A DNA stretch of 64,000 nucleotides from Hypanus sabinus (Eukaryota). Below, in pieces: positions 13,301-46,900 of the stretch (the first letter of the stretch is position 1; every line of letters starts with the position of its first letter). The notes below the pieces were generated by a model. That model was not told where the DNA came from. It worked only from the letters and a program-made list of their open reading frames with translations, and did not search any database. The stretch is taken from the NCBI RefSeq assembly GCF_030144855.1, contig NC_082727.1, positions 20,956,001 to 21,020,000 of the forward strand. The letters run 5' to 3'. Position numbers and translations under genes: made by a program.

Positions 13301-16300
13301 AATCTCAGCTCTCATGGTCCCTAATTTTGGGCCTGATCCCCGAATATGGTAGCCCGTGCAGTCAGGTCTTGTGGTGCTGAGCTGGACGCCTGGTGCTGCT
13401 GGGGTCTGGGGAGATCTGCAGTCAGCATTGGGGATTAAGGTCTGGTTGTGGCCAGATGTCAGGGACCACGGGTCAGGGGTCAGGATCCTGGGGTTTGGGT
13501 GGAACTGATGGTCATCTTCAAGGGTTGTAGTGGGGTCAGGGTCCAGAGGTCTGAGGGTCAGGGGTCAGCAAGGTCAAGATCCGTGTGTCCTGTGGGTCCA
13601 CATTTGCAGGTGTTTCTCTCTATTCCAGATTCGGGTCTCGGTGTGGGACATCGAGGGCCTCCAGGACCCCCTGGACCCCCAGGGAGACTCTCCAGCGCTG
13701 ACCTGATCACCTACCTGCAAAGTAAGTCTGAAGCGGCTGGAAATGTACTCCATGGTCTGAGCCCCGTCAGCCACAAGGCAGAAAGGAGCAACAGTCAGAA
13801 CAGAGACCCAGGGTCAGCACTGAACTTATCCTGACACCAAACACTCCACACACTGTCCAGAGCAAGCCTCGCCTTGTGTCTGGCCCTGTCACTGTCTGTG
13901 ATGGGTCGGTGTGGAGGGAGCCTCACCCTGTGTCTGGCCCTGTCACTGTGTGTGATGGGACAGTGTGGAGGGAGCCTCACCCTGTGTCCGGCCCTGTCAC
14001 TGTGTGTGATGGGACAGTGTGGAGGGAGCCTCACCCTGTGTCCGGTCCTGTCAGTGTGTGATGAGACAGTGTGGAGGGAGCCTCACCCTGTGTCTGGCCC
14101 TGTCAGTGTGTGATGGGTCGGTGTGGAGGGAGCCTCACCCTGTGTCCGGCCCTGTCAGTGTGTGATGGGACAGTGTGGAGGGAGCCTCACCCTGTGTCCG
14201 GCCCTGTCAGTGTGTGATGGGACAGTGTGGAGGGAGCCTCACCCTGTGTCTGGCCCTGTCAGTGTGTGATGGGACAGTGTGGAGGGAGCCTCACCCTGTG
14301 TCTGGCCCTGTCAGTGTGTGATGGGACAGTGTAGAGGGAGCTTCACTCTGTATCTGACCCTGGGGGTGTGTGATGAGAGTGTGGAGGGAGCCTCACCCTG
14401 TGTCCAGCCCTGTCACTGTGTGTGATGAGACAGTGTGGAAGGAGCCTCACCCTGTGTCTGGCCCTGTCAGTGTGTGATGGGACAGTGTAGAGGGAGCTTC
14501 ACTCTGTATCTGACCCTGGGGGTGTGTGATGTGGTGGTAGGGGCTGGGGGTCTCTCTGTGACAAGCTGTATACCAGGACCTGGGATTCACTGATCTCCTC
14601 TCCGCATCCACAGGGACGGAAGTTCAGCAATACCTGCGAGGACTCCTGGGTCCTTCTGGCCCACAAGGAGACTGGGTCAGTCATGTCGAGCTGGAGGCTT
14701 ACGTCACGGATTTCAGCAGAAGTAACGTCCGCTTTGGCTGGGGGTTGTGGGGGAGGTGTGAGTGTGTCATGTGCGGTGCTGAGGAATGCANNNNNNNNNN
14801 NNNNNNNNNNNNNNNNNNNNNNNNNNNNNNNNNNNNNNNNNNNNNNNNNNNNNNNNNNNNNNNNNNNNNNNNNNNNNNNNNNNNNNNNNNNNNNNNNNNN
14901 NNNNNNNNNNNNNNNNNNNNNNNNNNNAATCCTGTGGTGCCTCTATCCCAGCTGGGGGGGGGGCGGTGGGAGGTGGTGGTCAGTGAACAGAGGCAGCCGA
15001 TGCCCCTCCAGCCAGATCATCCCTCTTGCTGGCTCTGTGTCGGCTGGTCTGTGAAAGCTCAACTCCTGGGCTCTCCAGGTCCAGTTCTCTGGTCACATCT
15101 TGACTGGAACCCTCTGCCCACTATTCCCTTCCCATCTCACTCTCCGGCTCCTCCTCTGGACCCTCCCCACCTGTCTCACTGTGCTCCCTCTTGTTGCAGG
15201 TTGGTCGGCCGGATCAGGACGCCCAGGACCTCCAGGACCTCCTGGACCTCAAGGACCACCAGGGTCTCTGTCCTCAACCAGGGATCTCGCAGTCTTGCTG
15301 CAGGGTGAGTCCTCCAGGAATCGGGCAGGGGAGGGGTCTCGTAGAGGTGAGCTAAGGGAGGAGTCTAGGATCAGGGGTGAAGTGGGGTGCTGAGCTAGGG
15401 GACAGGGGAAGATGTAGATCAGGGTGCGACTGGTCGTCCATCCATGACCTGACTTCCTTTCTCCCCCCACCCCCCCACCGAGGCTGACCGCCATGATCCA
15501 GTGATTAACCAGACAGGTTGGATGGGCAGAGTGGCCACTCAGTACTCTGACCCACAGTGAGACGTCACTGGTCTCCGACAGTCACATCAGCTCAGTTGGT
15601 CTGGTTGGTCCATCCAAACCTCTCCCGAAAGAACACCCATTTCTCCCCACCTCCCGCTCCCCCTCCCACCCCAGCTGTGTTTGAGAGTGTGGGGTTACAG
15701 TGGATGAGGCTAGGTTATACAGAGAGCCTCTGCCCCAGAGACTAGACAACGCCACAGCTGTCTGTCCTCTCTCACAGACCCTGCCCTACCGTGCCTACCA
15801 ATGCAAGCCAGGGTCTCTGAACGCCTCCAACCCATATGCTCAAACCCCTCTCCATCTGTCCCATCATCAGATCTACCCCATCTCCATCTGCCCTGTCACT
15901 AGATTTAACCCCTCTCCTTTTAGCCTATCACCAGACCTACCCCCTCTCTCCCACCCCGCACATAGCTGTTATTCCTGAGGGACCGGACTCCACATTCTCC
16001 CCACTGTCGAGACCAGAGTTTCTCCTACATTCCCCACAGAGACGTCAGTAAGTACTTCGATATAACATCCCTGTCTGTCTCCCTCACACAGCATCACCTT
16101 ACCTGATGAGCCCCTCTGGGAGGTTACAGTCTTATTGAAGTTGGTATTGGTTCATTATTGTCCCACAGACCAAGGGCAATGAGAAGCTTTTGTTTCTTTC
16201 ATTCAATAAGAATGAAAGGAAACGAGAATTCAGAAACTAATATTAGAGCAAAAGAGAGTGCAGAGCTAATAAGGTTCAAGGGTCATGAGAGGTCAACAGT

Positions 16301-19300
16301 TCATCTGCAGTGTACGAGAGAGCTATTCAAGACTGAAGAGATCGAAGCCGTCCTTGAACCTGATGGTGTGCAATTCAGAGTTCTATAGCTTCTGCCCAGA
16401 CGGGAGAAGGTGGATGCGGACTGCTTCACTGAGGCAGTGATAGGTATAGACGGAGTCAGTGGAAGGGAGGTGGTTTGTGTGACAGGCTGGGCTGTGTCTG
16501 CAACTCCCTACGATGCCCCATCTGTCCAGAGCAGAGCCCCTTGTCTCTCGTAAATGCTCTTTGAACGCCCCAGTGATTTCTGGTTCTCTCTGCAGATGAA
16601 AGCGTTCGGAGATATTTGGTGGGACCTCCTGGGCCACCAGGTCCACAGGGTCCGCCCGGGAGCCCAGGTTACACAGGGCGGGAGAGAGTCAGAGACACAC
16701 GGCTGGATTACAGAGACATTGCCCACCGGCTGCAGGACTACCTGAGGAGTGAGTGTGTGACCGCTACAGACGGTCAGCGGCGGCATATCCATCCACACAG
16801 ACCACCCCTAGGCTGGGCTGAGGGACCCTGGGTAACCCACCACCTCCTCATTGAGCACGGGATGGATTTGGAGAGGGGTGAGGCCAGAGGTAGAGGGTGG
16901 AGAAGGGGCAGGGTGTGGACTAGAACCCCAGGATTGACAACGTGGCTGAAGGCCTCAGTGGAGAGTGAAGGTAGGTAGGCAGCAGTCCGGGGGAGGGCTG
17001 GGAATGTGGAGGTGGGCAGGGATAGAGTTGGGATCATGGTGAAGCCAAGCTTCTGCTGAATTTGGGAAACAAAGGACCTCACAAGGAGCAGAGGGGACCC
17101 ATTACTGCCCCTTGTCAAGAATCCCTGTCCAGGAGGACCACCATGGAGTGGGAGCTGAGGGGCAGACGGTGGGGGTATAATCACTGGCTTGTGGAATGGT
17201 TTGTGGGTGGGATCCTGATGTGTAGATGGTCCTTTGGGGTGGGGGAGACCCCCGAGTGTGAATGGCACGATTTCCACAGCCAGGAGCCAGAATCAGGAAG
17301 CCGGGAACTGGGAATGGGGAAGGGAAGGTGGAATCAGCGATCAGGGAAGAGGAGTTGGGCTGGTATTGGGAAGAGGGGTTCAGGGAGACGGGATCAGGAG
17401 TGGGGAAGGGAGGCTGTGCAGTGGGTATGGTGCACACATGCCAGCCCTGTGATCACTTAGCGCTGCTGGGTTTGTGGTTTCACTGCCTCTCCCTCTCTCC
17501 TCTGCCAGGTTCTGGTACAGTCCTCCAGGTACAGGGACCCCCAGGACCTCCAGGAGCCCCAGGAACACCAGGTTCCATGTCCAGCGCTGAGCTGTTGGCT
17601 CTGCTACAGAGTGAGTATTGGCACCCCAATGTCCGTCCCAACACTAGTGTCTGTACCCTGGGAACACCCCCAAGTCACGGCATCCTGTTGGCAGGATGTT
17701 CCAGCTTTGGGGGAGCAGAGATACCAGTGATGGGACACCTGACCGCAGAGACGGGGAACTCCAGGGATACCCACACTCCCCTGGGACCCCCACCTCCACC
17801 TTGTCTTGGACACCCTGGCAGAGTCCGTGAACTCAGCATCTTCATCCCCAGAGATGGTGAACCATCCACATCCAGGGACCATTGGCCTCCCCAGGTGATG
17901 TGTGGGGTGCGGTGGGGAGCCTGGGATGTCTTGACCAGAAGTGGAGGGATGGTGTAGGAAGGGAGGAGGAGGGAATTAACGCCTGGGACATTCCAGCATC
18001 ACTGTATAACCTGTTCCTTTGCCTTTAGGTCCTCAAATCCGTGGGATCACTGGTCAACCAGGACCACCTGGACCGCGAGGTTTACCAGGCCCTGCCGGAC
18101 CGCCCGGACTTGGTGGAGGGAACCTCCGTGTTGAAGATGTTGTCACCTACATTCAGAGTAACTTGACCTCCTGCATGTTCAGAAAACGCTTTCCGTGGCT
18201 TGCGTTATATTGCGTGGTGTGCTGGGGTGACCGTGCGTCTGGGGGCACAGTGAAACCCTGGGTTTGACCCAGCCTGGACTCTGGTGGGCTGAGAGAGCCT
18301 GGTAACCCTTCCCTGGTGTCAAACTCTCCCTGGCTGGGACCAGTTCCCAGGCTCACCCCAGTTTCTAACCTCTGTGTTTGTGTCCAGATTCAGGTTACAG
18401 TGTCAGAGGCCCCCAGGGACCTCCCGGGCCTCCTGGACCCCCAGGGGGTGGTTTCAATTCCCAGGACCGGCAGCAACTCAAGAATGAGATTATTAATTAT
18501 TTCACAAGTAAGTACTGTGATAAACTGTTCAGTTTTATGTGCTGATAACTGAAGCCCCCTGCCTGCGAAGGAAGCTTTGTGTTCCCATTGGGGTCTGGTG
18601 TGATAGTAGGGGGTGCACCTGGAGAAAGGTTGACACTCTGTGTCGGACTGAGGCCGAGGACGTTCCTGGTTGACAGCTGGAAAACTGTTCAGAATCCGAT
18701 CTACTGTACCCTGGGCTCCCGTTTTCCTCGTGAGCCCTCTGAGGCTGATTCAGGTTCATTTATCCTGTACATTGAAACAATGCTTCATGGGATTAACAGC
18801 CAACAAAACCCAGGGATGTGCTGGGGTCAAGGCTACAAGACCAGCACTAAATGTGGCATTTTGTGGCCACATTTTTGTGCTCTGGGCAGTGACCCCTGTA
18901 ATGAAGAAATAAAGTGGAACACCAAAGGTGTTGTTGTCATGACTTGAGAGAACCCTGGTGAATGAATCGACCCATTCCACTTCTCAAATGCCGTTCAACA
19001 CGCTGACTTCTTTCACCCTTTTGTCCTTGTTCCAAATTCCAGCAACTTCTGTCCATTTGGCCCCTCTCCCCCACCGCACCATCAGTAAGATCACGGCTGA
19101 CCTTTTACCCCTGGGCCACTTCCCTGCGCCGTCCAGAGATCTGTCCATCTCGGTGCTGATCTTGCTGGCGACCATATTTCCACTGCTGCCTGGGGTAGTG
19201 ATTCCCACCACTCTCCCTCTCTGGAGGGGTTCCTTCCCACCACAGTCACCCCAAGCAGGTGGGGTGGCTCTCGGCAGCTGGAGCATTTCAGACCGTGGCC

Positions 19301-22300
19301 TCATTTCCTTTGCTGGACACTCAGCTCTGCTGCCTTGTGTTTGTCAGCCCTAGTTGTAGAAGGATTTCAATATCCCGAGTCTACTCCCATGACTCCTTGC
19401 CTGGGACACTGTCATGCACACTCTGGGCTACTTCCACAGTGTGTGGTTCAGTATTACCGCAGGGGTAATGTCAAAATCAAACAAAGACAAAGTAAATTTA
19501 TTATCAAAGTACGGATATATCTTTACACTACTGTGTGATTTTCATGCGGCACCCCAGGAAAACAAAGAAATATAATAGAATTTATGTAGATGGTTAAGTA
19601 GGTAGATAATTACACTGAGAAGGTTCAGGACACTGATGGCTGAGAAGTAATAACTGTCCCTGAACCTGGTGCTGTGGGATTTAAAGCTCCGATACCTCCT
19701 GCTTAATGGCAGTAGTGAGAAGAGAGTGTGGCTTGAGTGCTGAGGGCTGTTGATAATGGATGCTGCTTTCTTGTGGCAGTGCACCACGTAGATGGGCCGA
19801 ACAGTGCATCAAGGTGCTGTAGAGATTGTACAGACTTCTCCAGCCTTACAACCCGTCGCTCTCTGCACAGTGCAGGGGTGATGCTGTTTAATGTTACTTG
19901 TGTGCCTGTCCAATGTAATGTATTCTCTTCACTGATTCTAACGATGAGAGTGCCAGTGCCCCTGTGCTCCGCACTCCCTCTGTGCACAGCTGGTAATCCA
20001 GCCTCTCTCTGGATGTGGGGGCAGAAGGATGGGTTGGCAAGTTTGCAGACGACACAAAGGTTGGTGGTGTTGTGGATAGTGTAGAGGATTGTTGAAGATT
20101 GCAGAGAGACATTGATAGGATGCAGAAGTGGGCTGAGAAGTGGCAGATGGAGTTCAACCCAGAGAAGTGTGAGGTGGTACACTTTGGAAGGACAAACGCC
20201 AAGGCAGAGTACAAAGTAGATGGCAGGATATTTGGTAGCATGGAGGAGCAGAGGAATCTGGGGTACATGTCCACAGATCCCTGAAAGTTGCCATAGGGTA
20301 GTGAAGAAAGCTTATGGGGTTTTAGCTTTCATAAGTCGAGGGACAGAGTTTAAGAGTTGCGAGGTAATGATGCAGCTCTGTAAAACTCTAGTTAGGCCAC
20401 ACTTGAAGTACTGTGTCTAGTTCTGGTCACCTCACTATAGGAAGGATGTGGAAGCATTGGAAAGGGTACAGAGGAGATTTACCAAGATGCTGCCTGGTTT
20501 AGAGAGTATGCATTATGATCAGAGATTAAGGGAGCTAGAGCTTTACTCTTTGGAGAGAAGGAGGATGAGAGAAGTGATAGAGGTATACAAGATATTAAGA
20601 GGAATAGATAGAGTGGACAGCCAGTGCCTCTTCCCCAGGGTACCACTGCTCAATACAAAAGGACATGGCTTTATGGTAAGGGGTGGGAAGTTCAAGGGGT
20701 ATATTAGGGGAAGGTTTTTTACTCAGCGTGGTTGGTGCGTGGAATGCACTGCCTGAGTCTGTGCTGGAGGCAGATACACTAGTGAAATTTAAGAGACTAC
20801 TAGACAGGTATATGGAGGAATTTAAGGTGAGGGGATATATGGGAGGCAGGGTTTAAGGGTCAGCACAACATTGTGGGCCGAAGGGCCTGTACAGTGCTGT
20901 ATTATTCTATGTTTTATGTTCTCCTACAGGTGACCGGATGAGGCCGTACATCATGGGCCCCCCAGGACCCCCAGGTCGTGTTGTATACTCTGAACTGGCC
21001 CCACGACTTATCCAGTACATGCGAGGTAAGTCATCGGCGAAGAGGCAACTCGAGTTTATTAAAGATTAACTTTATTTGTTACATATACGTAGAACATTCA
21101 AAGACATGGTGAAATGCATCATTTGTGTCGATAACCGACATTTTCTGAGGACATCCCACAGGTGTTGCCATGCTTCCAGCATAGCATGCCCATAAGTTAC
21201 TAACCCTAACCAGTACCTCTTTGGAATGTGGGACGAATCCCACCCAGTTGCAGGGAGAACACACAAACTCTTTACAGACAGTATTGGGAATTGAGCCCCA
21301 GCTACACTGTTGATATTTCCATCAAAATCAGAGCACGTTGACCTCAAACGAGCCTCTTGCTTTTCCAGACAATGGGCTGATTGATTCCCGTGTCATCGCT
21401 GGTGGGGGTTCAGGGCGTAATGGATACCTGTGGCGAGAGCGAACTTATGGAAATGGCACAGACTTCGAGAACTACTTGAGAGGTAGGACAATTGTCGTAG
21501 GGTGGGGAGAGGCTGGGATGAGGGCAAGTGGTGGGAGGGGGAGACTTGAAAGGTGGGTCAGGAGGGGGTGTCATTGTGGGATGAAGAGTTTGGAATGAAG
21601 GGTTCATGAAGTTGCTGAGTTCGAACATTAATTGCCCTTCAAACTCAAACATGAAATAACTTTTGGTGAAGGAAAGCTGGGCAGTTTAGGTCTTTACTCA
21701 CTGTGTTTGGAAGAATGAGATGTGATATTATATAAGCACACAGTTCTGAGGAGGACTGACAGAATGGATACTGAAAGGGTGATTCCCCTGGAGGGGTAGC
21801 TAGACCCAGTGTCCAGATGGAACTCCCACCTCAGAGATGTCAAGGGAGGTGGAACACTGGAATTCTCTGCCGGAGATCCGTGGAGTTGCTGAAAGTATTC
21901 AGGGTGGAGGCTGACTGATCTCTGAAACTAGAGTACTGTACATTGAGGGGGAATGGAGAGAGTGACAAAGGTGGGTCATCTGTGATCACATTACTTGGGT
22001 GGGGCAGCCTCAAGAGCCTATTCTTGCTCTGGTTTTGTGTATCTTTATTCCAGTACTTATTCTGCTAATCACTACATTATCCAGTAACTGGTTCCCACGT
22101 TGTCCTCTTGTAGATAATAGTTGGACTAGTCACGCATCCCACACTTCGTCCCGAAGCTCGGGTGCACCTGGGGTAGCCAACTGGCTTCAGTTCGATTGGG
22201 AGAAAGTGTTCAACGGGAACAAGACAGCGTATGAGGAATTCCTGAGAGGTGAGAACGGTTGTGTAATTGGAGTTTGCAGTTCAGTTCTGGTGTCCTCTGT

Positions 22301-25300
22301 AAGGAGTCTCAGTATGTCCTCCCCTTCACTATAGGAAGGATGTGGAAGCATTGGAAAAGGTACAGAGGAGATTTACCAGGATGCTGCCTGGTTTAGAGAG
22401 TATGCATTATGATCAGAGATTAAGGGAGCTAGGGCTTTACTCTTTGGAGAGGAGGATGAAAGGAGACATGATAGAGGTATACAAGATACTAAGAGGAATA
22501 AATAGAGTGGACAGCCAGCGTCTCTTCCCCAGGGCATCACCGCTCAATACAAGAGGACATGGCTTTAAGGTAAGGGGCGGGAAGTTCAAGGGGGATATTA
22601 GAGGAAAGTTTTTTACTCAGAGAGTGGTTGGTGCGTGGAATGCACCGCCTGAGTCAATGGTGGAGGCAGATACATTAGTGAAATTTAAGAGTCTACCAGA
22701 CAGGTATATGGAGGAATTTAAGGTGGGGGGTTATATGAGAGGCAGGGTTTAAGGGTTGGCACAATATTGTGGGCCGAAGGGCCTGTACTGTGCTGTACTA
22801 TTCTATGTTCTATGAATGTGTGGGTTTTCTCTGGGTCCCCCGGTTTCCTCCCCACAGTCCAAAGACATACCAGGGTTATCAGTGATTGTAATTTGTCCCA
22901 AGATTAGGTTAGGGCCAAATCGTGGTTGCTGGGCAGAGCAGCTCAAAGGGCTTATTTCACATGGCACCTGAAAAGTAATTAATTATTGTCATTTCCAGTA
23001 CACAAGTGTAAAGGAGAACAAAATAATTGTTACTCCAGATCTGATGCAGCACAGAAAAAAACTCACATGATAAAGAACACAGTAATAATACTAACAGAAT
23101 AAATATAAATCCATAAGATGGCTTATATACATACGTTGATTGGATGTATGTCCATAAGGTGACGCTAGGCACAGGAGTGTATGTACATAAAGTGACCTTG
23201 ACAGGAAGTGATAAAGTAGTGATGGTTGGGAGTGTGGAGAGGTGAATTAGTGGGTGGAGGTGTTGATGAGCCTTACTGCTTGTGGAAAATATCTGTGTTT
23301 GGGTCTGGTGGTCCTGGTGTGGGTATTTCATCACCTTTCCCTGATGGGAGTGGAACAAACCATCCAGGAACAGGCAGGGTAGATTGTTACTGGCCCTCTT
23401 CCGGCACCTTTCTGTATCCATGTCCCTTATTCAGGTAGGCTGGTGCCAGTGACGTGTTGGGCAGTTTTGACTACCCGTTCAATCCAGGTGAAGTTGGAAA
23501 TACAACAAAATGAAAGCTGACTTAGTGTTCACCTTGTACCCCGGGGGGGGGGGGGGGAATGGGGGGAATCACCCTCTGCAGCAGTGTGAGAGTGAAATGT
23601 TTATCACTGTTACTGATTCCAACATTGTTCTCCTATAGACTACGGCTGGATAGTGCAGGCATCCCACGGCTCAGGGGCATCCGATCGCAGACAGTTCGAT
23701 TGGGAGAAACTGTTCAACGGGAACAGGACAGCGTATGAGGAATTCCTGAGAGGTGAGAGCTGTTGTGTAAAATTCTCGGTCACTGCAGGGGATTTATAGG
23801 CGTGGTACAGGGTCTCAGACAGAACCTCATGAACAGATGGGAGGAGCTGCTTCAAGGTTGGGAATCCGAGAACCGTAACAGCACCTTTTCAAGTGGATCA
23901 TTATCTTACATCACAAACTGTGTTACCCTGACATCCCTTACTCTGTGATGTATCCTCATGGTCTGAGCAGAGCCACTGAATTCAGCCCCCCAGACCGGGG
24001 CAGGAAACTGGTCTGTCAATCTTCTCCAGATTCACCTCAGAGTGGCTGCCTCTCTGGGTGGACTATGCGTGAGTCAAGATGGGGTTGTGAGCCCCACATT
24101 GTTTGTAATTCTGATTGTGTCTCGAGTTAGCGGAAAGTCAGCTTGGGTTGGTGTTCCAGGTACAGTCACCGTGATGACAGCCTCTCACCATTTACCTCTG
24201 GTTCAAGTTTGAGGGCTGGTTACAGATCCACTTGCTCTTTCTGAAGCCCTTGGCAGAATTGCTTGTCTTTGCTGGAAATACTTGGTCAATTGCGATATCA
24301 CTGTGTCACAGGCGGAGGAGACTGTGAGCTAATCCAAACACCAGCCTTCTGCTCAACTTGAAAAATCCCTGACCTATTCAAAAGCAAACAAGGGGACCAC
24401 TGCCAGTCTGAAGTAAAATAGAAACTCTGGGAGATGTTGCGTCAGGCAGCCTCTGTGGCAGAGAGATACAGTCAACGTTTCACTAGATCCAGATTCAAGA
24501 TTGGGTACCATGGGAGAGCAGCAGTTAGCACAACACTATCACAACTCAGGGTATCAGAGTTTGGAGTTCAATCCTTGTGTCCTCCCTCTGTAAGGAGTCT
24601 CAGTACGTCCTCCCCGTGGAATGTGTAGGTTTTCCCCTGGTTTCCTTCCCCACAGTCCAAAGATGTACCAGGGTTACCGGTGATTGTAATCTGTCCCATG
24701 ATTGGGTTAGGGCTAAATTGGGGCTGCTGGGCAGAGCAGCTCAAAGGGCTTATTTCACACTGCACCTCAAAAGTAATTAATTAATTATCATCATTTCCAG
24801 TACACAAGTGTAAAGGAGAACAAAATAATTGTTACTCCAGATCTGATGCAGCACAGAAAAAAAACTCAAAATGAAAAAGAACACAGTAATAATACTAACA
24901 GCATAAATATAAATATGTAAGATGGCTTATATACACATGTTGATTGATTGTATGCCCATAAGTTGATGCTATACACAGGAGTGTATGTACATTAGGTGAC
25001 TTTGACAGGAAATGATAAGGTAGTGGTGTTTGGGGGTCTGGAGAAATGGATTAGTGGGTTGAGATACGTCTTTGAACTCTGGAGGTGTTGATGAGCCTTA
25101 CTGCTTGTGGAAAGTATCTGTGTTTGGGTCTGGTGGTCCTGGTGTGGGTGTTTCATCGCCTTTCCCTGATGGGAGTGGAACAAACAATTCATGAACCGGC
25201 TGGGTAGATTGTTACTGCCCCTTTTCCAGCACCTTTCTCTATCTACGTCCTTTATTCAGGTAGGCTGGTGCCAGTGATGTGTTGGGCAGTTTTGACTACC

Positions 25301-28300: not shown

Positions 28301-31300
28301 TGATTTGTCCCATGATTAGTTTAGAGTTAAATCGGGGTTGCTGGGCAGTGCAGCTCAAAGGGTTTATTTCACACTGCACCTCAAAAGTAATTAATTATTT
28401 ATTGTCATTTCCAGAATACAAGTGTAAAGGAGAACAAAATAGTTGTTACTCCAGATCTGATGCAGCACAGAAAAAGTCACATGATAAAGAACACAGTAAT
28501 AATACTAACAGAATAAATATAAATACATAAGATGGTTTATATACACACGTTGATTGATTGTATGTCCATGAAGTGATGCTAGGCACAGGGGTATTTGTAC
28601 ATATGGTGACTTTGACAGGAAATGATAAAGTAGTGGTGGTGGGGGGCGTGGAGAGTGGAGATGTTAATCTGCCTTACTGCTTGGTGAAAGTAGCTCTTTT
28701 TGAGTCTGGTGGTCCTCTTCCCTGATGGGAGTGGGACAAACGGTCCATGAGCAGGCCCTTTTCTGGCACCTGTCCGTACAGTTCACACAGAGAGTGGTGG
28801 GTGTGTGGGAGGCGCTGCCAGTGACAGTGGTAGAGGCGGATACAATAGGGTCTTTGAGGAGACTCTTCATGAAGCTTAGAAAAGTAGAGTGCTATGCGCT
28901 AGGGAAATTCTAGGCAGTTTCTAGAGTAGGTTACATGGTCGGCTCAACATTGTAGGCCAAAGGGCCCGTAATGTGCTGTATGTCCTCTTCTTTTTCGATA
29001 TATGTCCCTTATTCAGGTAGGCTGGTGTCAGTGATGCTCTGGGCAATTTTGACTACCCGTTCAATCCAGGGAAAGTTGGAGGTCCAACAAAATGGAAGCT
29101 GACTTACTGTTAACCTGGTACCCCAGGAGGATTAATCTCTGCAGTGTGAGAGTGAAATGTTTATCGCTGTTACCAATTCCAACATTGTCCTTCTGTAGAA
29201 AACGGCTGGGCAGTGCATGCATCCCACGGCTCGGGGGCATCCGATCGCAGACAGTTCGATTGGGAGAAAGTGTTCAACGGGAACAGGACAGCGTATGAGG
29301 AATTCCTGAGAGGTGAGAGCGGTTGTGTAAATTTCTTGGCCACTGCAGGGGAATTATAGGCGTGGTACAGGGTCTCAGACAAAACCTCATGAAGTTGACA
29401 GATGGGAGGAGCTGCTTCAAGGTTTTGTGTCCCAGAACTGTGATGGCACTATTTCAAGTGGTTCACCATCTAACATCACAAACTGTGTTACCCTGACATC
29501 CCTTACTCTGTGATGTATCCTCATGGTCTAAGCAGAGCCACTGAATTTAGCCCCCGAGACCCGGGCAGGAAACTGGTCCGTCATTCACTTCAGAGTGGCT
29601 GTCTCGGTGTGGACTATGGGCGCATCAAGATGCGCACTGTTGATCAACCTGACGGTGTCTCGAGTTAGCGGAAGGTCAGCTTGGGTTGGTGTTCCAGGTA
29701 CAGTCACCATGATGACAGCCTCTCACCATTTACCTCTGGTTCAAGTTTGAGGGCTGGTTACAGATCCACTTGCTCCTTCTGAAGCCCTTGGCAGAATTGC
29801 TTGTCTTTGCTGGCAATACTTGGTCGATTGCGATATCACTGTGTCACAGGCGGAGTAGACTGTGAGCTAAGCCAAACACCAGCCTGCTGCTCAGCTTGAA
29901 AAATCCCTGAACTGTCCAAAAGCAAACATGGTGACCGCTGCCAGTCTGAAGTTAATATAGAAACCGTGGGAGGCATTGAGTCAGGCAGCCTCTTTGGCGA
30001 GAAATGCAGTCAACATTTCACTAGATCCAAGATCAGCCACCACAGGAGCGCAGTGGTTAGCACAACACAATTACAACTCAGCGCATCAGAGTTTGGAGTT
30101 CAATCCTCGTGTCCTCTGTAAGGAGTATGTCCTCCCCGTGGAATGTGTGGGTTTTCTCTGGGTCCTCCAGTTTCCTCCCCACAGTAGTACCAAGATGTAC
30201 CAAATAGTTTATTAATGATTGTAAATTGTCGCATGATTAGTTTAGAGTTAAATCGGGGTTGCTGGGCAGTGCAGCTCAAAGGGCTTATTTCACACGGCAC
30301 CTCAAAAGTAATTAATTAGGTTTCAATAGGTACATTTAATGTCAGAAATGTTTACAATATACAAACCCCATTTTCAGAAAAGTTGGTATTTTCCAAAATG
30401 CAATAAAAACAAAAATCTGTAATATGTTAATTCACATGAACCTTTATTTAACTGACAAAAGTACAAAGAAAAGATTTTCAATAGTTTTACTGACCAACTT
30501 AATTGTATTTTGTAAATATACACTAATTTAGAATTTGCTGGCTGCAACACACTCAACAAAAGTTGGGACAGAGTTAAAATAAGATTGAAAAGTGCACAGA
30601 ATATTCAAGTAACACTGGTTTGGAAGACTCCACATTAAGCAGGCTAATTGGTAGTAGGTGAGGTATCATGACTAGGTATAAAAGTAGCATCCATCAAAGG
30701 CTCAGTCTTTGCAGGCAAGGATGGGTCGTGGCTCACCCCTTTGTGCCAAAATTTGTGAGAGAATTGTTAGTCAGTTCAAAAGGAACGTTTCCCAACGCAA
30801 GTTTGCAGAGAATTTAGGTCTTTCAACATCTACAGTACATAATATTGTGAAAAGATTCAGAGAATTCAGAGACATCTCAGTGCGTAAAGGTTGGAAACCA
30901 CTGTTGAATGCGCGTGATCTTTGAGCCCTCAGGCGGCACTGCCTAAGAAACCGTCATGCTACTGTGACAATTATAGCCACCTGGGCTCGGGAGTACTTCG
31001 GAAAACCATCATCACTTAACACAGTCCGTCGCTGCATCCAGAAATGCAACTTGAAACTGTATTACGCAAGGAGGAAGCCATACATCAACTCTATGCAGAA
31101 ACGCTGGTGAGTTCTCTGGGCCCGAGCTCATCTCAGATGGACCAAAAGACTGTGGAACCGTGTGCTGTGGTCAGATGAGTCCACATTTCAGCTAGTTTTC
31201 AGAAAAAACAGGCGTCAAGTTCTCCGTGCCAAAGATGAAAACGACCATCCTGATTGTTATCAGCGAAAGGTGCAAAAGCCAGTATCTGTGATGGTATGGG

Positions 31301-34300: not shown

Positions 34301-36839
34301 ATAACATACCAAATCCTTACAAACAGTAGCAGAATGGAACACAGATTTCTGGTGCTGTAATAGCTAATCGCTAATTGTGCGGTCCGTAACTTGGTTGAAT
34401 TGGAAGCACAGAATCATTTAGTGTGGGAACACACCTTACAGCACATTGAGTTCACACCAACCATCCATCTATACCTCATTCCCATCAATCCCCCCTATCC
34501 TACCCCTTACACACGGGGGGGGGGGGGGAAGGTTGGGATTTTATAACAGCTGATGACTCCCCCCCCCCCCACCCCCAAGTTGTTAGGATATGGGAGAAAA
34601 TCGGAACAACCAGGGAGAAACCCACATGGTCAGAGGGAGAACGTACAAACTCCACACAGACAGGACCAGAGGTTGGGATCGAATCCGAGTCTCTGTGATT
34701 GATATCCTGTAAATGGCTCTCATTTGACTGCAGGCAGCAGAACACACCGTACATCCTCCAGCTCCTCCAGACGTTTTGGTGGTCCTGGAACCCAGGGCGT
34801 TGCTGAAAGCACACACCAGACATCCCATCGATCCAGTGCTCCTGGGGTGCAGTCATCAGCCACGGTGTGGAATGAGGATACGTACAGGAGTGGCACTCAG
34901 CTGGAGGACTCAAGGAAAGGTGAAGACCCAGCCCTATCCCAAACACTGCTGCAGGAAGAGCAGCCATCCCTGTCTGTAGCGGGGCTCTGAGCACAGCACT
35001 GTCTGGGAATCTAGAACAAAATCAACACTGGAGGAACTCATTGGGATAGTCAGCCTCTGCAAAGGCAAAGGGATGGTTGAGGGTTTGGCTCGAGACCTTT
35101 CATCAGGGCTGGGTCCCAACACAAACTACTGTCTTGCACCCATTTGTCTCCATAGATGTTACTCGGCCTGCTGAATCTGTCTGTGGGTCTGATCACATTG
35201 TCATGCATTGTCTGAAACCAGTTCTGTTGACCATCTCACCCCTGACAACCCTCCAGAGTCCAACAAGAATTATGCAGTAATACACAACACCGAAAAGAAA
35301 TTATTAGAACGATAATAGATGGCGATTGTGTCGTTAGAGACCAGGTTGGTAAGCCCCAGGGACATGAGCAGAGGGAGCCCAGAGTCCCTAACACTGCTGA
35401 CCAATCAGGTGGTTGCCCTTTTCTACCAATCACCTTCCATCTTTGGTGGGGAGATTGCCAATCTTTGGAGTTGGTTTGCCAATCCCATTGTGGACCCAGC
35501 AGTGCTCCGGTTTGGTGGGAGAGGATAGGGGAAGGGAGGGCAGGATCTTGGCACTGTCACTGCTGTGGCTGAGGCCAGCCCAGAACTGGTCACTTGGGAA
35601 AGATTAGCTTACGTCTGCCAATTTAACGTTGTAGCAACACATGGGGATGCTCACTTTGTGTGGGTGTCAGATGAGAACCAGGGAGAACAGCTGGAGAAGG
35701 GGAGGCAAAGGAGAGCTGAAGCTGGGGAGCACAGACACCTGGTTCAGTATGCAGGGATTAGCACACTGCCCCTCTGTCTGGGAGTGACCGGCCTAGGCCT
35801 CATGCTTTGCTCCCATCAGACCCCACACACTCACAGTTGGCCAAGTTCAATTACATCTCCGTAGGGTGTAGGTTCCACACTCCACTGCTCTCAGTGAAGT
35901 TCCTCTTCACAGAATTTAAATGGGTGATCCTTTTGTAGTGAGACTGTGCCCAGGCCTGGACTGTGGTCACTTCAGCATCTCACTATTCATTTACTCTTTG
36001 AAACTCCATAGGACGTTGTCTCAATCTACTTCGGACCGCTAAATTTAACCCTGGGTAGAGCTGTGAATCATGAATTCCAACATTACTAAGGCTTCCTGTG
36101 ACCAGCCCCACTCACCATATTTCTCTCATTTCACCCACTGTCAATAGACACCCAGCCCTGCTCTTGGTAACACTGCCTCAGTTACACCATTCCTCACTAG
36201 GGTCCCCTGCAAGAGCAGAGCTCCTCATTCCCAGTTTACTCTTAACATCATCCTTGTTCTTAAATCTCTCCCCACATCCATAATCTCCAAACTCAGACCT
36301 ACTCTCATCTGGATCTCTTGATCATTCCCTTCACTCATCACATGCAGCCATGCCTTCAGATGTCTAGTCCCAAACCTCTAGGATCTCTCCCTGGTCCCAC
36401 TACCCCTCTCCCTTTACAGTCTCTCTCCCAGTCCCACTACCACTCTTCCTCATCCCACTTCCCCTTCCTCTTCCTCCCCCAATACCACCAGATCCTATCC
36501 CACTTTCCACCCACGGAACTTCTCCCCGGTGTCCCTGACCCTAGCCCAGGGGTTCCCAACCTGGGTTCCACTGACTATCGGTCCATGGCATATAAAAGGT
36601 TGTGAAACCCTGGCCTACCCTTCAGCCACCTGCCCTGATGATATTACTGATGTGAGTTCTGTTTGATGCTCCTGTGAAACACATCGGGACATAAAAGGCC
36701 TTTCATATGTACAGATTACAGCAGTAGAGATATGGTGGATGAAAAACAACCCAGGACCTGGTACAGTAATCATTTCTTTCTTTCTGTAGATCACACCAGA
36801 CACAGGCGGAGCCGCAAGAGAGCACCTGCCCTCAAGTAG
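40..36839 (+). CDS. COL17A1: Collagen alpha-1(XVII)-like (BP180), 3' portion; 33 exons in window, 5' end upstream of window
   Basis: Chain of GT-AG exons, all phase 1, giving interrupted Gly-X-Y. Junction [21 protein letters not shown] resembles human [35 protein letters not shown] resembles YSELASHVVSYLR; polybasic tail; next to STN1/SLK as in human. Confidence 0.88.
176..211 (+). CDS. COL17A1: COL17A1-like exon (GDTGERGPRGAQ)
   Basis: 36 nt, tttcag/gtgagt, Gly-X-Y. Confidence 0.88.
1165..1480 (-). mobile_element. CR1 LINE 3' fragment
   Basis: Peptide RGHNFK...VVGAWNILPEMVVEADTLGRFKRLL. Confidence 0.8.
2274..2327 (+). CDS. COL17A1: COL17A1-like exon (GESGPRGPPGATGEPGQK)
   Basis: 54 nt, ttacag/gtgagt. 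Confidence 0.9.
2792..2827 (+). CDS. COL17A1: COL17A1-like exon (GTTGADGIRGPR)
   Basis: 36 nt, actcag/gtacga. Confidence 0.85.
3297..3535 (+). repeat. Direct tandem duplication, 118 bp x2
   Basis: cccactccacagtg block at 3301 and 3419. Confidence 0.85.
3919..3972 (+). CDS. COL17A1: COL17A1-like exon (GEQGPRGLPGMPGDPGAP)
   Basis: 54 nt, cctcag/gtgagt. Confidence 0.9.
4967..5005 (+). CDS. COL17A1: COL17A1-like exon, end of the long collagen domain (GEPGTPGKIITSG)
   Basis: 39 nt, ttgcag/gtgaga; resembles human GKIVTSE. Confidence 0.88.
6661..6726 (+). CDS. COL17A1: COL17A1-like exon ([22 protein letters not shown])
   Basis: 66 nt, gttcag/gtgagt. Confidence 0.88.
7662..7712 (+). CDS. COL17A1: COL17A1-like exon (GESIIGPPGAEGPAGPK)
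   Basis: 51 nt, ccacag/gtaagt. Confidence 0.9.
8208..8285 (+). CDS. COL17A1: COL17A1-like exon ([26 protein letters not shown])
   Basis: 78 nt, ttgcag/gtacac. Confidence 0.88.
8727..8744 (+). CDS. COL17A1: COL17A1-like microexon (GLQGYK)
   Basis: 18 nt, branch point actaat, ttgcag/gtaaga, two Gly-X-Y triplets. Confidence 0.75.
9007..9048 (+). CDS. COL17A1: COL17A1-like exon (GERGHPGQPGIPAP)
   Basis: 42 nt, tgtcag/gtaagt. Confidence 0.88.
9613..9687 (+). CDS. COL17A1: COL17A1-like exon ([25 protein letters not shown])
   Basis: 75 nt, ccctag/gtcagt. Confidence 0.88.
10185..10244 (+). CDS. COL17A1: COL17A1-like exon (GERGDIGIPGAPGIPGRSPV)
   Basis: 60 nt, tatcag/gtagga. Confidence 0.85.
11352..11402 (+). 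CDS. COL17A1: COL17A1-like exon ([17 protein letters not shown])
   Basis: 51 nt, ccacag/gtgagt. Confidence 0.88.
11754..12082. mobile_element. hAT-like MITE
   Basis: Imperfect TIRs cgatgttccctct / agaaggaacgttg; degenerate 8-bp TSD ctgcccta / ctgcccac. Confidence 0.55.
12296..12358 (+). CDS. COL17A1: COL17A1-like exon (GPPGVSGSVGQVRQLVMETLQ)
   Basis: 63 nt, ctccag/gtaagt. Confidence 0.85.
13122..13253 (+). CDS. COL17A1: COL17A1-like exon (SDGVWNSLSGPPG...[13 protein letters not shown])
   Basis: 132 nt, tttcag/gtaagt; resembles human DYSELASHVVSYLR. Confidence 0.92.
13629..13721 (+). CDS. COL17A1: COL17A1-like exon (DSGLGVGHRGPPG...SSADLITYLQ)
   Basis: 93 nt, ttccag/gtaagt. Confidence 0.9.
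13875..14530 (+). repeat. 52-54 bp minisatellite, about 12 copies
   Basis: Unit ccctgtgtctggccctgtcagtgtgtgatgggacagtgtggagggagcctca. Confidence 0.92.
14614..14721 (+). CDS. COL17A1: COL17A1-like exon (RTEVQQYLRGLLGPSGPQG...ELEAYVTDFSR)
   Basis: 108 nt, ccacag/gtaacg. Confidence 0.8.
15200..15304 (+). CDS. COL17A1: COL17A1-like exon (SWSAGSGRPGPPG...RDLAVLLQ)
   Basis: 105 nt, ttgcag/gtgagt. Confidence 0.9.
16596..16748 (+). CDS. COL17A1: COL17A1-like exon (DESVRRYLVGPPG...LDYRDIAHRLQDYLR)
   Basis: 153 nt, ctgcag/gtgagt. Confidence 0.92.
17509..17610 (+). CDS. COL17A1: COL17A1-like exon (SSGTVLQVQGPPG...SSAELLALLQ)
   Basis: 102 nt, tgccag/gtgagt. Confidence 0.9.
18029..18157 (+). CDS. COL17A1: COL17A1-like exon (SPQIRGITGQPG...VEDVVTYIQ)
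   Basis: 129 nt, ctttag/gtaact. Confidence 0.9.
18388..18507 (+). CDS. COL17A1: COL17A1-like exon (NSGYSVRGPQG...LKNEIINYFT)
   Basis: 120 nt, gtccag/gtaagt; resembles human FRSELISYLT. Confidence 0.9.
20025..20922 (+). mobile_element. CR1 LINE, 5'-truncated (RT C-terminus to 3' tail)
   Basis: [32 protein letters not shown] motifs; ttctatg-type tail. Confidence 0.9.
20930..21025 (+). CDS. COL17A1: COL17A1-like last Gly-X-Y exon ([32 protein letters not shown])
   Basis: 96 nt, ctacag/gtaagt; resembles human VRSFIVGPPG...YNELAVRVSESMQ. Confidence 0.88.
21369..21482 (+). CDS. COL17A1: C-terminal repeat exon 1 (DNGLIDSRVIAGGGSGRNGYLWRERTYGNGTDFENYLR), most diverged
   Basis: 114 nt, ttccag/gtagga, phase 1-1, NGT sequon. 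Confidence 0.8.
22114..22248 (+). CDS. COL17A1: C-terminal repeat exon 2 (DNSWTSHASHTSSRSSGAPGVANWLQFDWEKVFNGNKTAYEEFLR)
   Basis: 135 nt, ttgtag/gtgaga, phase 1-1. Confidence 0.85.
22325..22814 (+). mobile_element. CR1 LINE 3' fragment, close relative of the 20.4-20.9 kb copy
   Basis: ORF 22342-22752 EALEKVQRRFTRMLPGL; ttctatg tail. Confidence 0.9.
23639..23752 (+). CDS. COL17A1: C-terminal repeat exon 3 (DYGWIVQASHGSGASDRRQFDWEKLFNGNRTAYEEFLR)
   Basis: 114 nt, ctatag/gtgaga. Confidence 0.85.
25463..25576 (+). CDS. COL17A1: C-terminal repeat exon 4 (DYGWIVQASHGSGASDRRQFDWEKVFNGNRTAYEEFLR)
   Basis: 114 nt, ctatag/gtgaga. Confidence 0.85.
27286..27399 (+). CDS. COL17A1: C-terminal repeat exon 5 (DYGWIVQASHGSGASDRRQFDWEKVFKGNRTAYEEFLR)
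   Basis: 114 nt, ctatag/gtgaga. Confidence 0.85.
28780..28985 (+). mobile_element. Short CR1 3' fragment specific to the repeat 5-6 intron
   Basis: [24 protein letters not shown]. Confidence 0.75.
29199..29312 (+). CDS. COL17A1: C-terminal repeat exon 6 (ENGWAVHASHGSGASDRRQFDWEKVFNGNRTAYEEFLR)
   Basis: 114 nt, ctgtag/gtgaga. Confidence 0.85.
30362..31952 (+). mobile_element. Tc1/mariner transposon, full length, inactive (transposase ~30721-31734 with frameshift and stops)
   Basis: ~200-bp TIRs (CAAACCCC...GGGATTTG), TA on both sides, WSDES / QDNARPH / SPDLSPIEN catalytic motifs. Confidence 0.93.
33147..33260 (+). CDS. COL17A1: C-terminal repeat exon 7 (DKGWAVHTSHSTATSNGKQFDWDQLFKDDKEAIEEYRR)
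   Basis: 114 nt, ctgtag/gtgaga; N-glycosylation sequon absent. Confidence 0.85.
33610..34200 (-). mobile_element. CR1 LINE fragment
   Basis: MLAFIARGIEFK...YCVQFWSPYLKDILALEVVQR. Confidence 0.85.
34734..34919 (+). CDS. COL17A1: COL17A1-like penultimate exon, Ser/Thr/Gly-rich (GSRTHRTSSSSSRRFGGPGTQG...LEDSRK)
   Basis: 186 nt, ctgcag acceptor, weak gtgaag donor, open in phase 1-1. Confidence 0.62.
36790..36839 (+). CDS. COL17A1: COL17A1-like terminal coding exon (DHTRHRRSRKRAPALK*)
   Basis: Strong pyrimidine tract + tag; polybasic tail like human DQVYAGRRRRRSIAVKP; TAG at 36837-36839. Confidence 0.8.
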
Positions 36840-43900: not shown

Positions 43901-46900
43901 CTCCTTTCCCTTCCCCCCACCAGCCTTTTCTGGCTTCTCCCCCTTCCCTTCCAGTCCTGTGGAGGGTCTTGTCCTAAAACGTCAACTGTATATTCCCCTC
44001 CATAGATGTTGCCTCACTTACTGAGTTCTTCCAGTATTTTGTATGTGGTGCTCCCTCAAGTTTACAAGCATCACAGAAACTCTTGTGCACCACCCCACCC
44101 CCCAATCTCCTCACCTCTTTCTCCTGCACTGAGCTCTCAGCCGAGCTTTGACCCAAGCCTTGTCCACACGAAACTTCCTGACTGCGCTGAGCAACGCAGG
44201 ATAACCAGTCGATGGCCTCCAGCTCGCGTTGGTAGAAGTTCTTCACTTGGCTCTGAGCCAGAAACTCTTTGATCTTGCTTTGCAGGGAAAGGATGCATTC
44301 TCCGTCTTCGCTGGGGATGAGGAGATACGAGCAGGGAGAGAGAGATTGCAGATAAGATTAGCTTTACTACTCACATGTACATTGAAACATATAACAAAAT
44401 GTATTATTTGCATTAAATTTGCATTTCCTACTGCACAGAACTGAAAGAAGCTACAGAAAGTTGTAAAATTAGTCAGCACCATCTTGGTACTAGTGTCCAA
44501 AGCACCAAAGATTCTTCCAAGGAGCGGTGCCTCAGAAAGAAGGTGTCTATTATTAAGGACCCCCATCACCCAACACACGCCCTTTTCTCATTGTTACAGC
44601 AAGGAAAGAGGTACAGAAGCCTGAAGGCACTCACTCAGTGATTCAGGAACAGTTTCTTCCCCTGTGCTGTCTGTTTCCTAAATGGACACTGAACCCATGA
44701 ACATTACCTTAAATTTTTATGTATTATTTCTGTTTTGCATTACNNNNNNNNNNNNNNNNNNNNNNNNNNNNNNNNNNNNNNNNNNNNNNNNNNNNNNNNN
44801 NNNNNNNNNNNNNNNNNNNNNNNNNNNNNNNNNNNNNNNNNNNNNNNNNNNNNNNNNNNNNNNNNNNNNNNNNNNNNNNNNNNNNNNNNNNNNNNNNNNN
44901 NNNNNNNNNNNNNNNNNNNNNNNNNNNNNNNNNNNTCTGCGAGTCACGCATCTGCGAATCGAACCTGGAAGTGCTCTTCCNNNNNNNNNNNNNNNNNNNN
45001 NNNNNNNNNNNNNNNNNNNNNNNNNNNNNNNNNNNNNNNNNNNNNNNNNNNNNNNNNNNNNNNNNNNNNNNNNNNNNNNNNNNNNNNNNNNNNNNNNNNN
45101 NNNNNNNNNNNNNNNNNNNNNNNNATGTGTGGGTTATCGTGGATAGGGATCGGAAAAAATCTTAAGTTCTCTTACTAAGTAAGTCGGAGCAGGTACATCC
45201 AGTATTATTTAGTGTCAGTTAGTCAAACGTTTGCCTTAGTATATAGTATATATTTTACCTTTCTATGCATATAAAACACTTAAGAACGTATGTTTCAGCA
45301 CCGGGCTTGGGAACGTGTCGGGTTCAAAACCCCAAAGCCCAATAATTAAACCATTGCGTTGCTTAGTAATAACTGTCACTTTCATCAGGGCAGGGCTTTT
45401 CTCACTTTATCCTTTAAAATTGTTCCGATCATTGACTGAAGTAGCCTAACACTTTTACAATGACTGATGGCGTTTCACCTCTTTCCGATCGCTTTATTAT
45501 TTCCACTTTATTTTCAATCGTGATCGTGATTATTTTCGTGAACAGAAACATTGCGGATTCAGAGCTCCGCCAGGTCCCAAAGACCACCGCACTGAGACAG
45601 GTTAAATAAAGTCTGGGGTTCCACTGGGTCCTAAGGTCCACTGCATTTAGCCAGGTTGAATAAGGGACTTGAGCATCAGCATTTTTTGCTATCCGCAAAG
45701 GGTCCCGGAACCAATCAAATCAGTGAGAGTTTTACAGGGCAGCCTGCAAATGGAGCCAGACTTCCAGCACCAACTTACTAGCTCTAACCTTTAGGTCTTT
45801 GGAATGTGGGAGGACACAGGAGCACCTGGAGGAAACTCACATGGTCATGGTGAGAACGTACAGCAGTGGGAACTGAACCCTAATCGCTGGCGCCATAATA
45901 ACGTTACACTAAACACTACATCTCTGTGCCACTATAGAGTTGGACAGAGAGCAAGCAGACAGACAAAACTGGGCAGGGTGCTCAGGGGAACAGCATTGAG
46001 ATCATAAACAGTCCCTTCCCTGACCTCTCCCCTCTGTTTCTGTTCACCACCACCCCCTCCCCCAGGATCCTTCCCGCTCTCTCCTCACATTCCTCCTCCT
46101 GCCGCACACCCCTCACTGCTTTCCCTATCCCAGTGCTTGAGCTGCCCCCCCCCCCCCCCAACCTCCCACTTATCCTCTGTTCTCACTTTGCCTCCGTGCT
46201 GTCCTTTGGAACTTGACACGCTTTGTCGTAGAAGCTGCGGTAAAGGTGAGGCAGCTCCAGCATGTGGGAGATCTGTATGGTGAAGAGAGGATCCACCAGC
46301 TTGGCTACAGGCAAAGAGAACATAACCAGAGCAGGAGTTACCCCAGCCCAGGGCAGATCCACCCCCACCCTGCCCCTTCCCATTCTCCCCCCCACACCCT
46401 GCCCCCTCCCATTCTCTCTCCCCCTCACCCTGCCCACTCGCAATTTCTCTCTACCCCCACCCTGCCCCCTCCTGTTCTCTACCCCTCACCCTGCCCCCTC
46501 CCATTCTCTACCCCTCACCCTGCCCCCTCCCATTCTCTCTCTCCCCGACCCTGCCTCCTCCCATTCTCTCCCCGACCCTGCCTCCTCCCATTCTCTCCCC
46601 CCACCCTGCCCCTGCCCATTCTCTACCCCTCACCCGTTCTCTGCCAGAATCCTGCCCCGTCCCGTTCTCTCCCCCAGCCCGCCCCCTCCCATTCTCTCCC
46701 CCACCCTGTCCCCTCCCATTCTCTCCCCCCACCCTGCCTGAGCCACTCACTGATACTGGTGCTACTGATTTCCCGTCGCTCTCTGTAATCCCTGATGCGT
46801 CCCCGGACCTGGACAACGTCGCCCAGGTCCAAGCGGGAATTGCCGTGTTCCAGTCTGGTGATGCGGCTCAGCTGGTCAAGGAGATCCAAGCCCCTGGAGG

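Follow-up and report, generated by a model that had tools for sequence, protein, structure and literature searches.

The stretch of DNA examined here, 64,000 nucleotides from the ray Hypanus sabinus (NCBI RefSeq assembly GCF_030144855.1, contig NC_082727.1, positions 20,956,001 to 21,020,000 of the forward strand), is referred to below as the window, with positions counted from its first letter. To judge from its exons, the + strand carries the 3′ half of an elasmobranch orthologue of COL17A1, the gene for collagen XVII (BP180), and near its 3′ end the gene includes a tandem array of seven copies of a single exon, six of which encode a sequon for N-glycosylation. Collagen XVII is known as the bullous pemphigoid antigen and its gene as a gene for junctional epidermolysis bullosa; the ectodomain of the human protein carries a single N-glycan, at Asn1421. 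Many short Gly-X-Y exons are found on the + strand between 39 and 18452, encoding many short Gly-X-Y runs broken up by short non-collagenous (NC) modules, which is the character of a COL17A1 ectodomain. Exon by exon, the window shares 60–83% identity with collagen α-1(XVII) of Narcine, Heterodontus, and Chiloscyllium, and the best matches are NCBI models from these three genera that bear the name "collagen alpha-1(XVII)." Exons of an orthologue of STN1 (an OB-fold telomere protein) are located on the − strand at ∼40.8–49.1 kb, tail-to-tail with the collagen gene, and STN1 is likewise found downstream of COL17A1 in Rhinoraja longicauda. It is the combination of Gly-X-Y exons, best matches, and STN1 neighborhood that identifies the gene as COL17A1. 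Its 5′ half lies upstream of the window; the COL17A1 orthologue has a membrane segment reading WWKWLLGLLL..

The seven exon copies are tandem and in frame on the + strand, all open and of phase 1–1, with a length of 114 nucleotides in each case except copy 2 (135 nucleotides), and every one of them is provided with a polypyrimidine tract and AG acceptor and with a GTRAG donor. Copy 1 (21369..21482), encoding (D)NGLIDSRVIAGGGSGRNGYLWRERTYGNGTDFENYLR, has the sequon NGT and retains three glycines in the collagen register. Copy 2 (22114..22248), encoding (D)NSWTSHASHTSSRSSGAPGVANWLQFDWEKVFNGNKTAYEEFLR, has the sequon NKT and is the orthologue of copy 2 in other elasmobranchs, with 62% identity to that of Narcine. 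The sequon NRT is found in copy 3 (23639..23752), copy 4 (25463..25576; (D)YGWIVQASHGSGASDRRQFDWEKVFNGNRTAYEEFLR), copy 5 (27286..27399), and copy 6 (29199..29312), with an N27K change just upstream of the sequon in copy 5. Copy 7 (33147..33260), encoding (D)KGWAVHTSHSTATSNGKQFDWDQLFKDDKEAIEEYRR, has KDDKEA at the sequon site and lacks both a sequon and a Ser-Gly dipeptide, with its splice sites intact. A tblastn scan of the window with all known copies returned exactly these seven together with one degenerate copy in the exon at 34734–34919, and a 20-nucleotide probe from the helix-coding part gave five matches, where chance alone would give 0.01. The 31 C-terminal residues are identical between copies 4 and 6, although the genomic units that contain them differ by ∼11%. 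Pfam assigned no family to any copy; Tandem Repeats Finder, with a longest period of 500, found nothing in the array, and the units were detected by another repeat search. An earlier note on this DNA had listed the sequons of copies 1–6 and their absence from copy 7, and had reported one Ser-Gly dipeptide in each of copies 1–6 (GSGR, SSGA, and four times GSGASD) and none in copy 7; both lists and the peptides hold as given, and the interval that it named, 22114–29312, contains copies 2–6 and leaves copies 1 and 7 outside.

The exon from which the array would descend can be recognized in bony vertebrates, where COL17A1 has one symmetric phase 1–1 exon made up of the end of NC3, COL2 (four or five triplets), and NC2, the last with one N-x-T sequon and, just after it, a short amphipathic helix. 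In Gekko kuhli the NC3 end, COL2, and NC2 occupy one phase 1–1 exon directly after an exon ending ..LDYNELAVRVYESIQ. The Leuciscus exon has the same boundaries as that of the gecko and the COL17A1-like gene of Scophthalmus has two such exons in tandem; in all three species the NC2 exons are of phase 1–1 and encode (N)xGLLxD ... SRVFxSYGNVTxDLMDFFR. Copy 1 of the window shares the phase, starts with (D)NGLID as compared with (N)RGLLQD, and ends with an Arg ten residues past the Asn, where the bony-vertebrate exon ends with Arg or Lys 10–11 residues past it. It also follows an exon homologous to the one that precedes NC2 in bony vertebrates, with the ending ..Y-x-E-L-A-x-R....; this upstream neighbor (20930..21025, + strand, 96 nucleotides, phase 1–1) is the last collagenous exon together with an NC3-like helix, (G)DRMRPYIMGPPGPPGRVVYSELAPRLIQYMR, is 75–76% identical to COL17A1 of Narcine and Heterodontus, and ends ..VYSELAPRLIQYMR, its gecko counterpart being the exon with the ending given above. 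These correspondences support copy 1 as the positional orthologue of the NC3-end/COL2/NC2 exon of gecko and teleosts. Profile comparison points in the same direction, in that hhalign of copy 1 with the NC2 exons gave P = 4.2e-4, with the last 24 columns aligned and the sequon in register, and none of 300 column shuffles reached the score; in hmmsearch, the E values of copy 1 against the isolated NC2 exons ranged from 8e-4 to 0.45.

The phase, length, and end point of copies 2–7 also match the NC2 exon, through duplication rather than by position. Their homology to copy 1 is evident both in hhalign (P = 9e-6) and in hmmsearch (E = 2e-6 to 3e-3, 19 of 20 copies). Compared directly with the bony-vertebrate NC2 exons, copies of the 2–7 type gave P = 0.14 in hhalign, with 26 of 300 shuffles reaching the score, and hmmsearch with a profile of this type, built from the copies of six species, yielded non-significant E values of 0.4–1.4 against the isolated NC2 exons. 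No significant match was obtained by hmmsearch with the copy 2–7, copy 1, or joint profile among 150 collagen-like proteins, seven of them COL17A1 of bony vertebrates; in this set the copy 1 profile placed the true NC2 sites of Pampus and of Scophthalmus in the second and third ranks, at E ∼0.6–0.7. Two further searches were of little use, the NC2 profile against whole shark proteins being dominated by Gly-Pro-Pro matches and thus uninformative, and a homologue search with the gecko tail region being swamped by collagen-like proteins of bacteria and phages and returning no mammalian COL17A1. As the direct similarity of copies 2–7 to NC2 is not significant, they are tied to NC2 only through copy 1, and the chain from the NC2 exon to copy 1 and from copy 1 to copies 2–7 is, as a reading of exon structure and profiles, well supported. 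The earlier note had aligned KVFNGNRTAYEEFLR by eye with a human NC2 sequence and had held that its proposal would fall if the repeat had no significant profile similarity to NC2. The direct alignment is not borne out by the profiles, and taken by itself the comparison of copies 2–7 with NC2 would count against the proposal; the NC2 origin stands by way of copy 1. The by-eye anchor that equated one KVF with another was rejected, being one or two residues out of register once the sequon and the exon end are fixed.

These comparisons also bear on whether the repeat stems from another of the COL17A1 NC modules, those of the type (helix)-Y-[ILM]-[RQK]-x-x-G, and gained its sequon independently. 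Many COL17A1 NC modules do end in an amphipathic ..Y[ILM][RQK]..G, the copy 1-NC2 profile score is modest, and copies 2–7 do not reach significance against NC2. Against such an origin, copy 1 coincides with the NC2 exon in phase, in both boundaries, in the preceding exon, and in the xxGL[LI]xD start, and has in addition three glycines in the COL2 register and the Y-G-N-x-T core; no other N-x-T-bearing candidate for NC2 is present downstream in the window. Derivation from a different module is accordingly regarded as improbable, and descent from the NC2 exon is retained in what follows.

In the bony-vertebrate exons the COL2 glycines are found at −22, −19, −16, −13, and −10 from the sequon Asn, and copy 1 of the window, of Heterodontus, and of Narcine keeps Gly at −16, −13, and −10. 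No copy in the window has the intact set of four or five Gly-X-Y triplets or a Pro-rich run of triplets, and copies 2–7 have one to three glycines in register. The loss of the COL2 triplets is a derived state and not evidence against descent from the NC2 exon, and by this comparison the Gly-Pro-Pro triplets have in the elasmobranch copies apparently decayed to a Gly/Ser-rich linker. What was multiplied is the whole exon, with the NC3 end, the decayed COL2, and NC2, and not just the helix next to the sequon. The proposal that one glyco-helix became six thus holds in that the NC2 sequon exon was multiplied and six copies carry a sequon, and gives way in that the unit of multiplication is the entire exon.

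The Gly of each Ser-Gly dipeptide in the window is placed at −13 (copy 1), −19 (copy 2), or −16 (copies 3–6) from the Asn, that is, in the COL2 glycine register, and for this reason the dipeptides are read as probable remnants of decayed Gly-X-Y triplets. The earlier note had suggested instead that they may be sites of glycosaminoglycan attachment; on that view ray collagen XVII would at times be a proteoglycan. Such chains are borne by collagens IX, XII, XV, and XVIII, and the frequency of the dipeptide, in six of seven copies in the window and 16 of 22 across species, exceeds the ∼0.3 per copy expected on shuffling. The sequence context is unfavorable, however: the motif SGxG occurs in none of the 22 copies from six species, only 0–1 acidic residues lie within 6 of the Ser-Gly in the window copies (2–3 in two shark copies), and the residues that follow are basic (GSGASDRR, GSGR). 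Ser-Gly is moreover missing from six of the 22 copies, among them both copies of the copy 2 type in Narcine, copies 1 and 3 of Rhinoraja, and copy 7 of the window, and the register of its Gly fits a decayed triplet. Attachment of glycosaminoglycans is therefore considered very improbable, and that part of the earlier proposal is not supported.

In copies 1–6 of the window the sequon Asn is in every case the 10th residue counted back from the exon end. The same distance is found in 20 of the 21 elasmobranch copies that have a sequon, and in seven bony-vertebrate exons the Asn is the 10th or the 11th residue. In all of these sequons Asn and Thr are constant, and G, K, R, N, D, V, A, or I stands between them. 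Variation of this kind would be expected if selection acts on the sequon, and not if a peptide were conserved as such. Copies 1–6 all conform to N-x-T with x other than Pro, and the sequon nearest the C terminus, that of copy 6, is by exon arithmetic ∼125 residues from the end of the protein. In the gecko, the sequon Asn is 70 residues from the C terminus, a position merely consistent with that of human Asn1421, presumably 76 residues from the end (1497 − 1421). The repeat is likely to be part of the lumenal or extracellular ectodomain, given orthologues with an N-terminal membrane anchor. As the ectodomain of a type II membrane protein this region would be lumenal in the endoplasmic reticulum, where each sequon may be N-glycosylated. 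The review PMC8623354, citing Franzke et al. 2006, states that human BP180 must be N-glycosylated at Asn1421 to be expressed at the cell surface. By analogy with that site the glycans would aid folding, quality control, and delivery to the surface, and through them the non-collagenous distal tip may also remain soluble in the basement membrane and resist proteases there.

Copies 2–6 reside in head-to-tail genomic units of ∼1.5–1.9 kb. Identity between units 3 and 4 amounts to 99.6% over 1823 bp; units 5 and 6 share ∼89–91% with units 3/4 and with each other, and unit 2 shares ∼70%. Growth of the array is, as these identities read, layered: an old set of copy 1, copy 2, and copy 3 types common to sharks and rays, the ∼10% diverged copies 5 and 6, and the 99.6% identical pair of copies 3 and 4. 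Copies 3–6 are recent duplicates, and their common sequon and Ser-Gly do not amount to four independent observations. The array would have grown by unequal crossing-over between the ∼1.8-kb units, or gene conversion may have kept the units alike; because the exon is symmetric (phase 1–1), any number of copies stays in frame. The exons have diverged less than their surroundings, by 6% as compared with 21% in the flanks for copies 4–6 (p = 5e-5) and by 20% as compared with 56% for copies 2–6. Copy 7 compared with copy 6 has a ratio of nonsynonymous to synonymous substitution rates (dN/dS) of ∼1.3, and this copy appears to have lost its sequon and to evolve as if unconstrained.

The near identity of units 3 and 4, which is within the allelic range, could signify that part of the array is an artefact of assembly, with copies 3 and 4 being one unit written twice, for example if two haplotypes had been joined in tandem. 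Units 5 and 6 differ by 9–11% from units 3/4 and from each other, so that at least six distinct loci are present, no N gap interrupts the array, and the units are in perfect head-to-tail register, all of which make an artefact unlikely to a marked degree. A number of mobile elements are also located in this part of the window. A DNA transposon of the Tc1/mariner-like kind, which has long inverted ends and a transposase frame that is apparently interrupted, occupies 30330–31950 in the intron between copies 6 and 7. Two 3′ fragments of CR1-like long interspersed nuclear elements, 86–91% identical to each other, are situated at 20500–20918 and 22394–22814, and one of them holds the open frame 22342–22752; the two are 1894–1896 bp apart, near the repeat period, and either were inserted independently or belong to an older unit of duplication.

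Downstream of copy 7, the tail exon (34734..34919, + strand, phase 1–1) encodes a Ser-rich stretch, which in the window gene is retained, at a position after the repeats, and then the degenerate eighth copy, VWNEDTYRSGTQLEDSRK, with Ser where the sequon Asn would be and hence no sequon. The tail exon may conceivably be a displaced NC4. The last coding exon (36790..36839, + strand) encodes (D)HTRHRRSRKRAPALK followed by the stop codon TAG, a basic NC1-like end with matches at the C termini of the proteins of Narcine and Rhinoraja; the basic C terminus, ..HRRSRKRAPALK, resembles ..GRRKRRSIGV of the gecko in character. Between these two exons, at 35634–35723, lies an exon remnant, ATHGDAHFVWVSDENQGEQLEKGRQRRAEA; its Rhinoraja homologue, the penultimate coding exon, has GT at the donor position, where the window has CT. 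This remnant is probably skipped; the frame is preserved when it is left out, and the protein and gene model of Narcine also lack it. No Gly-X-Y exon, of the COL1 type or any other, is present in the gene downstream of copy 1 (21483–36839), and the terminal COL1 helix is absent both from the window gene and from the proteins of Chiloscyllium, Heterodontus, Narcine, and Rhinoraja. Runs of N occur in the window at 14791–14927, 44744–44935, 44981–45124, and 50363–50513, none of them in the repeat array.

Taking exon structure, descent, and sequon conservation as a whole, the locus is best read as a tandem duplication of the symmetric NC2-sequon exon in elasmobranch COL17A1, present here in seven copies that would be spliced consecutively and N-glycosylated, with a probability that we put at roughly 0.7. 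On this model exons 1–7 of the array would be joined one after another in the mRNA. The gene models of four relatives include all of their copies, and all five RefSeq isoforms of Narcine include every copy. A number of points weigh against the reading. Inclusion of all seven exons is inferred solely from splice sites, open frames, and the gene models of relatives. The copy 1-NC2 profile score of 19.2 is barely above that of the best shuffle, 18.8, and the direct comparison of copies 2–7 with NC2 failed to reach significance, as described above. The dN/dS among copies 3–6, 0.26–0.52, derives from only 2–8 substitutions, these copies being young, and the pair of copies 3 and 4 could be an assembly duplication or the product of gene conversion. 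Finally, an AlphaFold model of the copy 1–3 region of Narcine, of low confidence (predicted local distance difference test score, pLDDT, 46.8), has short helices only, one after each sequon.

Some of these points would be accommodated if the copies are real in the DNA and some of copies 3–7 are alternative, mutually exclusive, or dead exons, the protein then having fewer than six sequons. Since all copies are of phase 1–1 any subset of them would be in frame, copy 7 combines a dN/dS of ∼1.3 with loss of the sequon, and the donorless remnant at 35634–35723 reveals that exon death does occur in the tail. The polypyrimidine tract, AG, and GTRAG are nevertheless kept in all seven copies, the exons are less diverged than the flanking introns, and every copy is present in the models of the four relatives and in all five Narcine isoforms. 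Partial inclusion is on balance unlikely, although it carries appreciable weight, and consecutive splicing of all seven copies is preferred.

The exon boundaries of the sequon exon and its Asn and Thr are kept in sharks, rays, teleosts, and the gecko, and the exon was duplicated independently in teleosts and elasmobranchs with retention of the sequon. As comparative evidence, this points to the glycan, and not to the neighboring collagen helices, as the functional element conserved at the distal tip. The case shows how copy number can grow through a symmetric exon without breaking the reading frame, and the species compared offer a natural series of 1, 2, 3, 5, and 6 sequons in which glycan load could be set against the trafficking of a transmembrane collagen. 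A broader and speculative proposal, which we consider rather unlikely as a whole, is that sharks and rays rebuilt the distal tip of collagen XVII, giving up the two terminal helices and using the sequon exon as an expandable cassette (three, five, or seven copies) whose copy number continues to change. In that event the tip, at its contact with the lamina densa, would form a non-collagenous "brush," tunable and heavily N-glycosylated, that carries as many as 18 glycans per trimer.

When 1.84 billion proteins were searched with a profile of the repeat, three matches were obtained, all of them shark or ray proteins and one of them the full-length "collagen alpha-1(XVII) chain-like" protein of Chiloscyllium plagiosum; the COL17A1 models of Heterodontus francisci and Narcine bancroftii came from later homologue searches. 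The repeat is in this way known from five other sharks and rays, namely Chiloscyllium, Heterodontus, Narcine, Rhinoraja longicauda, and Scyliorhinus torazame, the last as a fragment. The four of these with a complete tail have three to five sequon-bearing copies, in which the sequon is invariant. Three copies are present in each of Chiloscyllium, Heterodontus, and Rhinoraja, the genome of Rhinoraja having exactly three and a degenerate tail copy, and Narcine has five, owing to a larger duplication in which the tail exon was doubled as well. The literature search returned no paper on COL17A1 in cartilaginous fishes; the array is a lineage-specific variant of a known gene, produced by a known mechanism (tandem duplication of a symmetric exon), and is undescribed in the literature searched.

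COL17A1 of the other elasmobranchs has in common with the window the exons of the copy 1, copy 2, and copy 3 types, the NRT sequon, the Ser-rich tail exon with a degenerate copy at its end, and the basic C terminus. Among the elasmobranchs compared, only the window has the four-fold amplification of the copy 3-type unit and the copy 7 devoid of a sequon. The NC2 exon of tetrapods and teleosts resembles copy 1 in its x-x-G-L-[LI]-x-[DE] start, its single N-x-T, the short helix after the sequon, and a preceding exon that ends ..Y-x-E-L-A-x-R....[QRK]. Bony vertebrates have one copy of this exon (two in one teleost paralogue), with intact triplets and followed by COL1, whereas the window has seven copies with decayed triplets (at most three in-register Gly) and no COL1-type exon after them. 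A further parallel is the COL17A1-like paralogue of the teleosts Scophthalmus maximus and Pampus argenteus, which has two tandem NC2 exons; those of Scophthalmus (locus 16170–16570) are of phase 1–1, and both keep N-x-T (NAT and NVT). This paralogue differs from the window in having only two copies, in the intact Gly-X-Y helix within each, and in its retention of COL1, and represents an independent duplication of the same exon.

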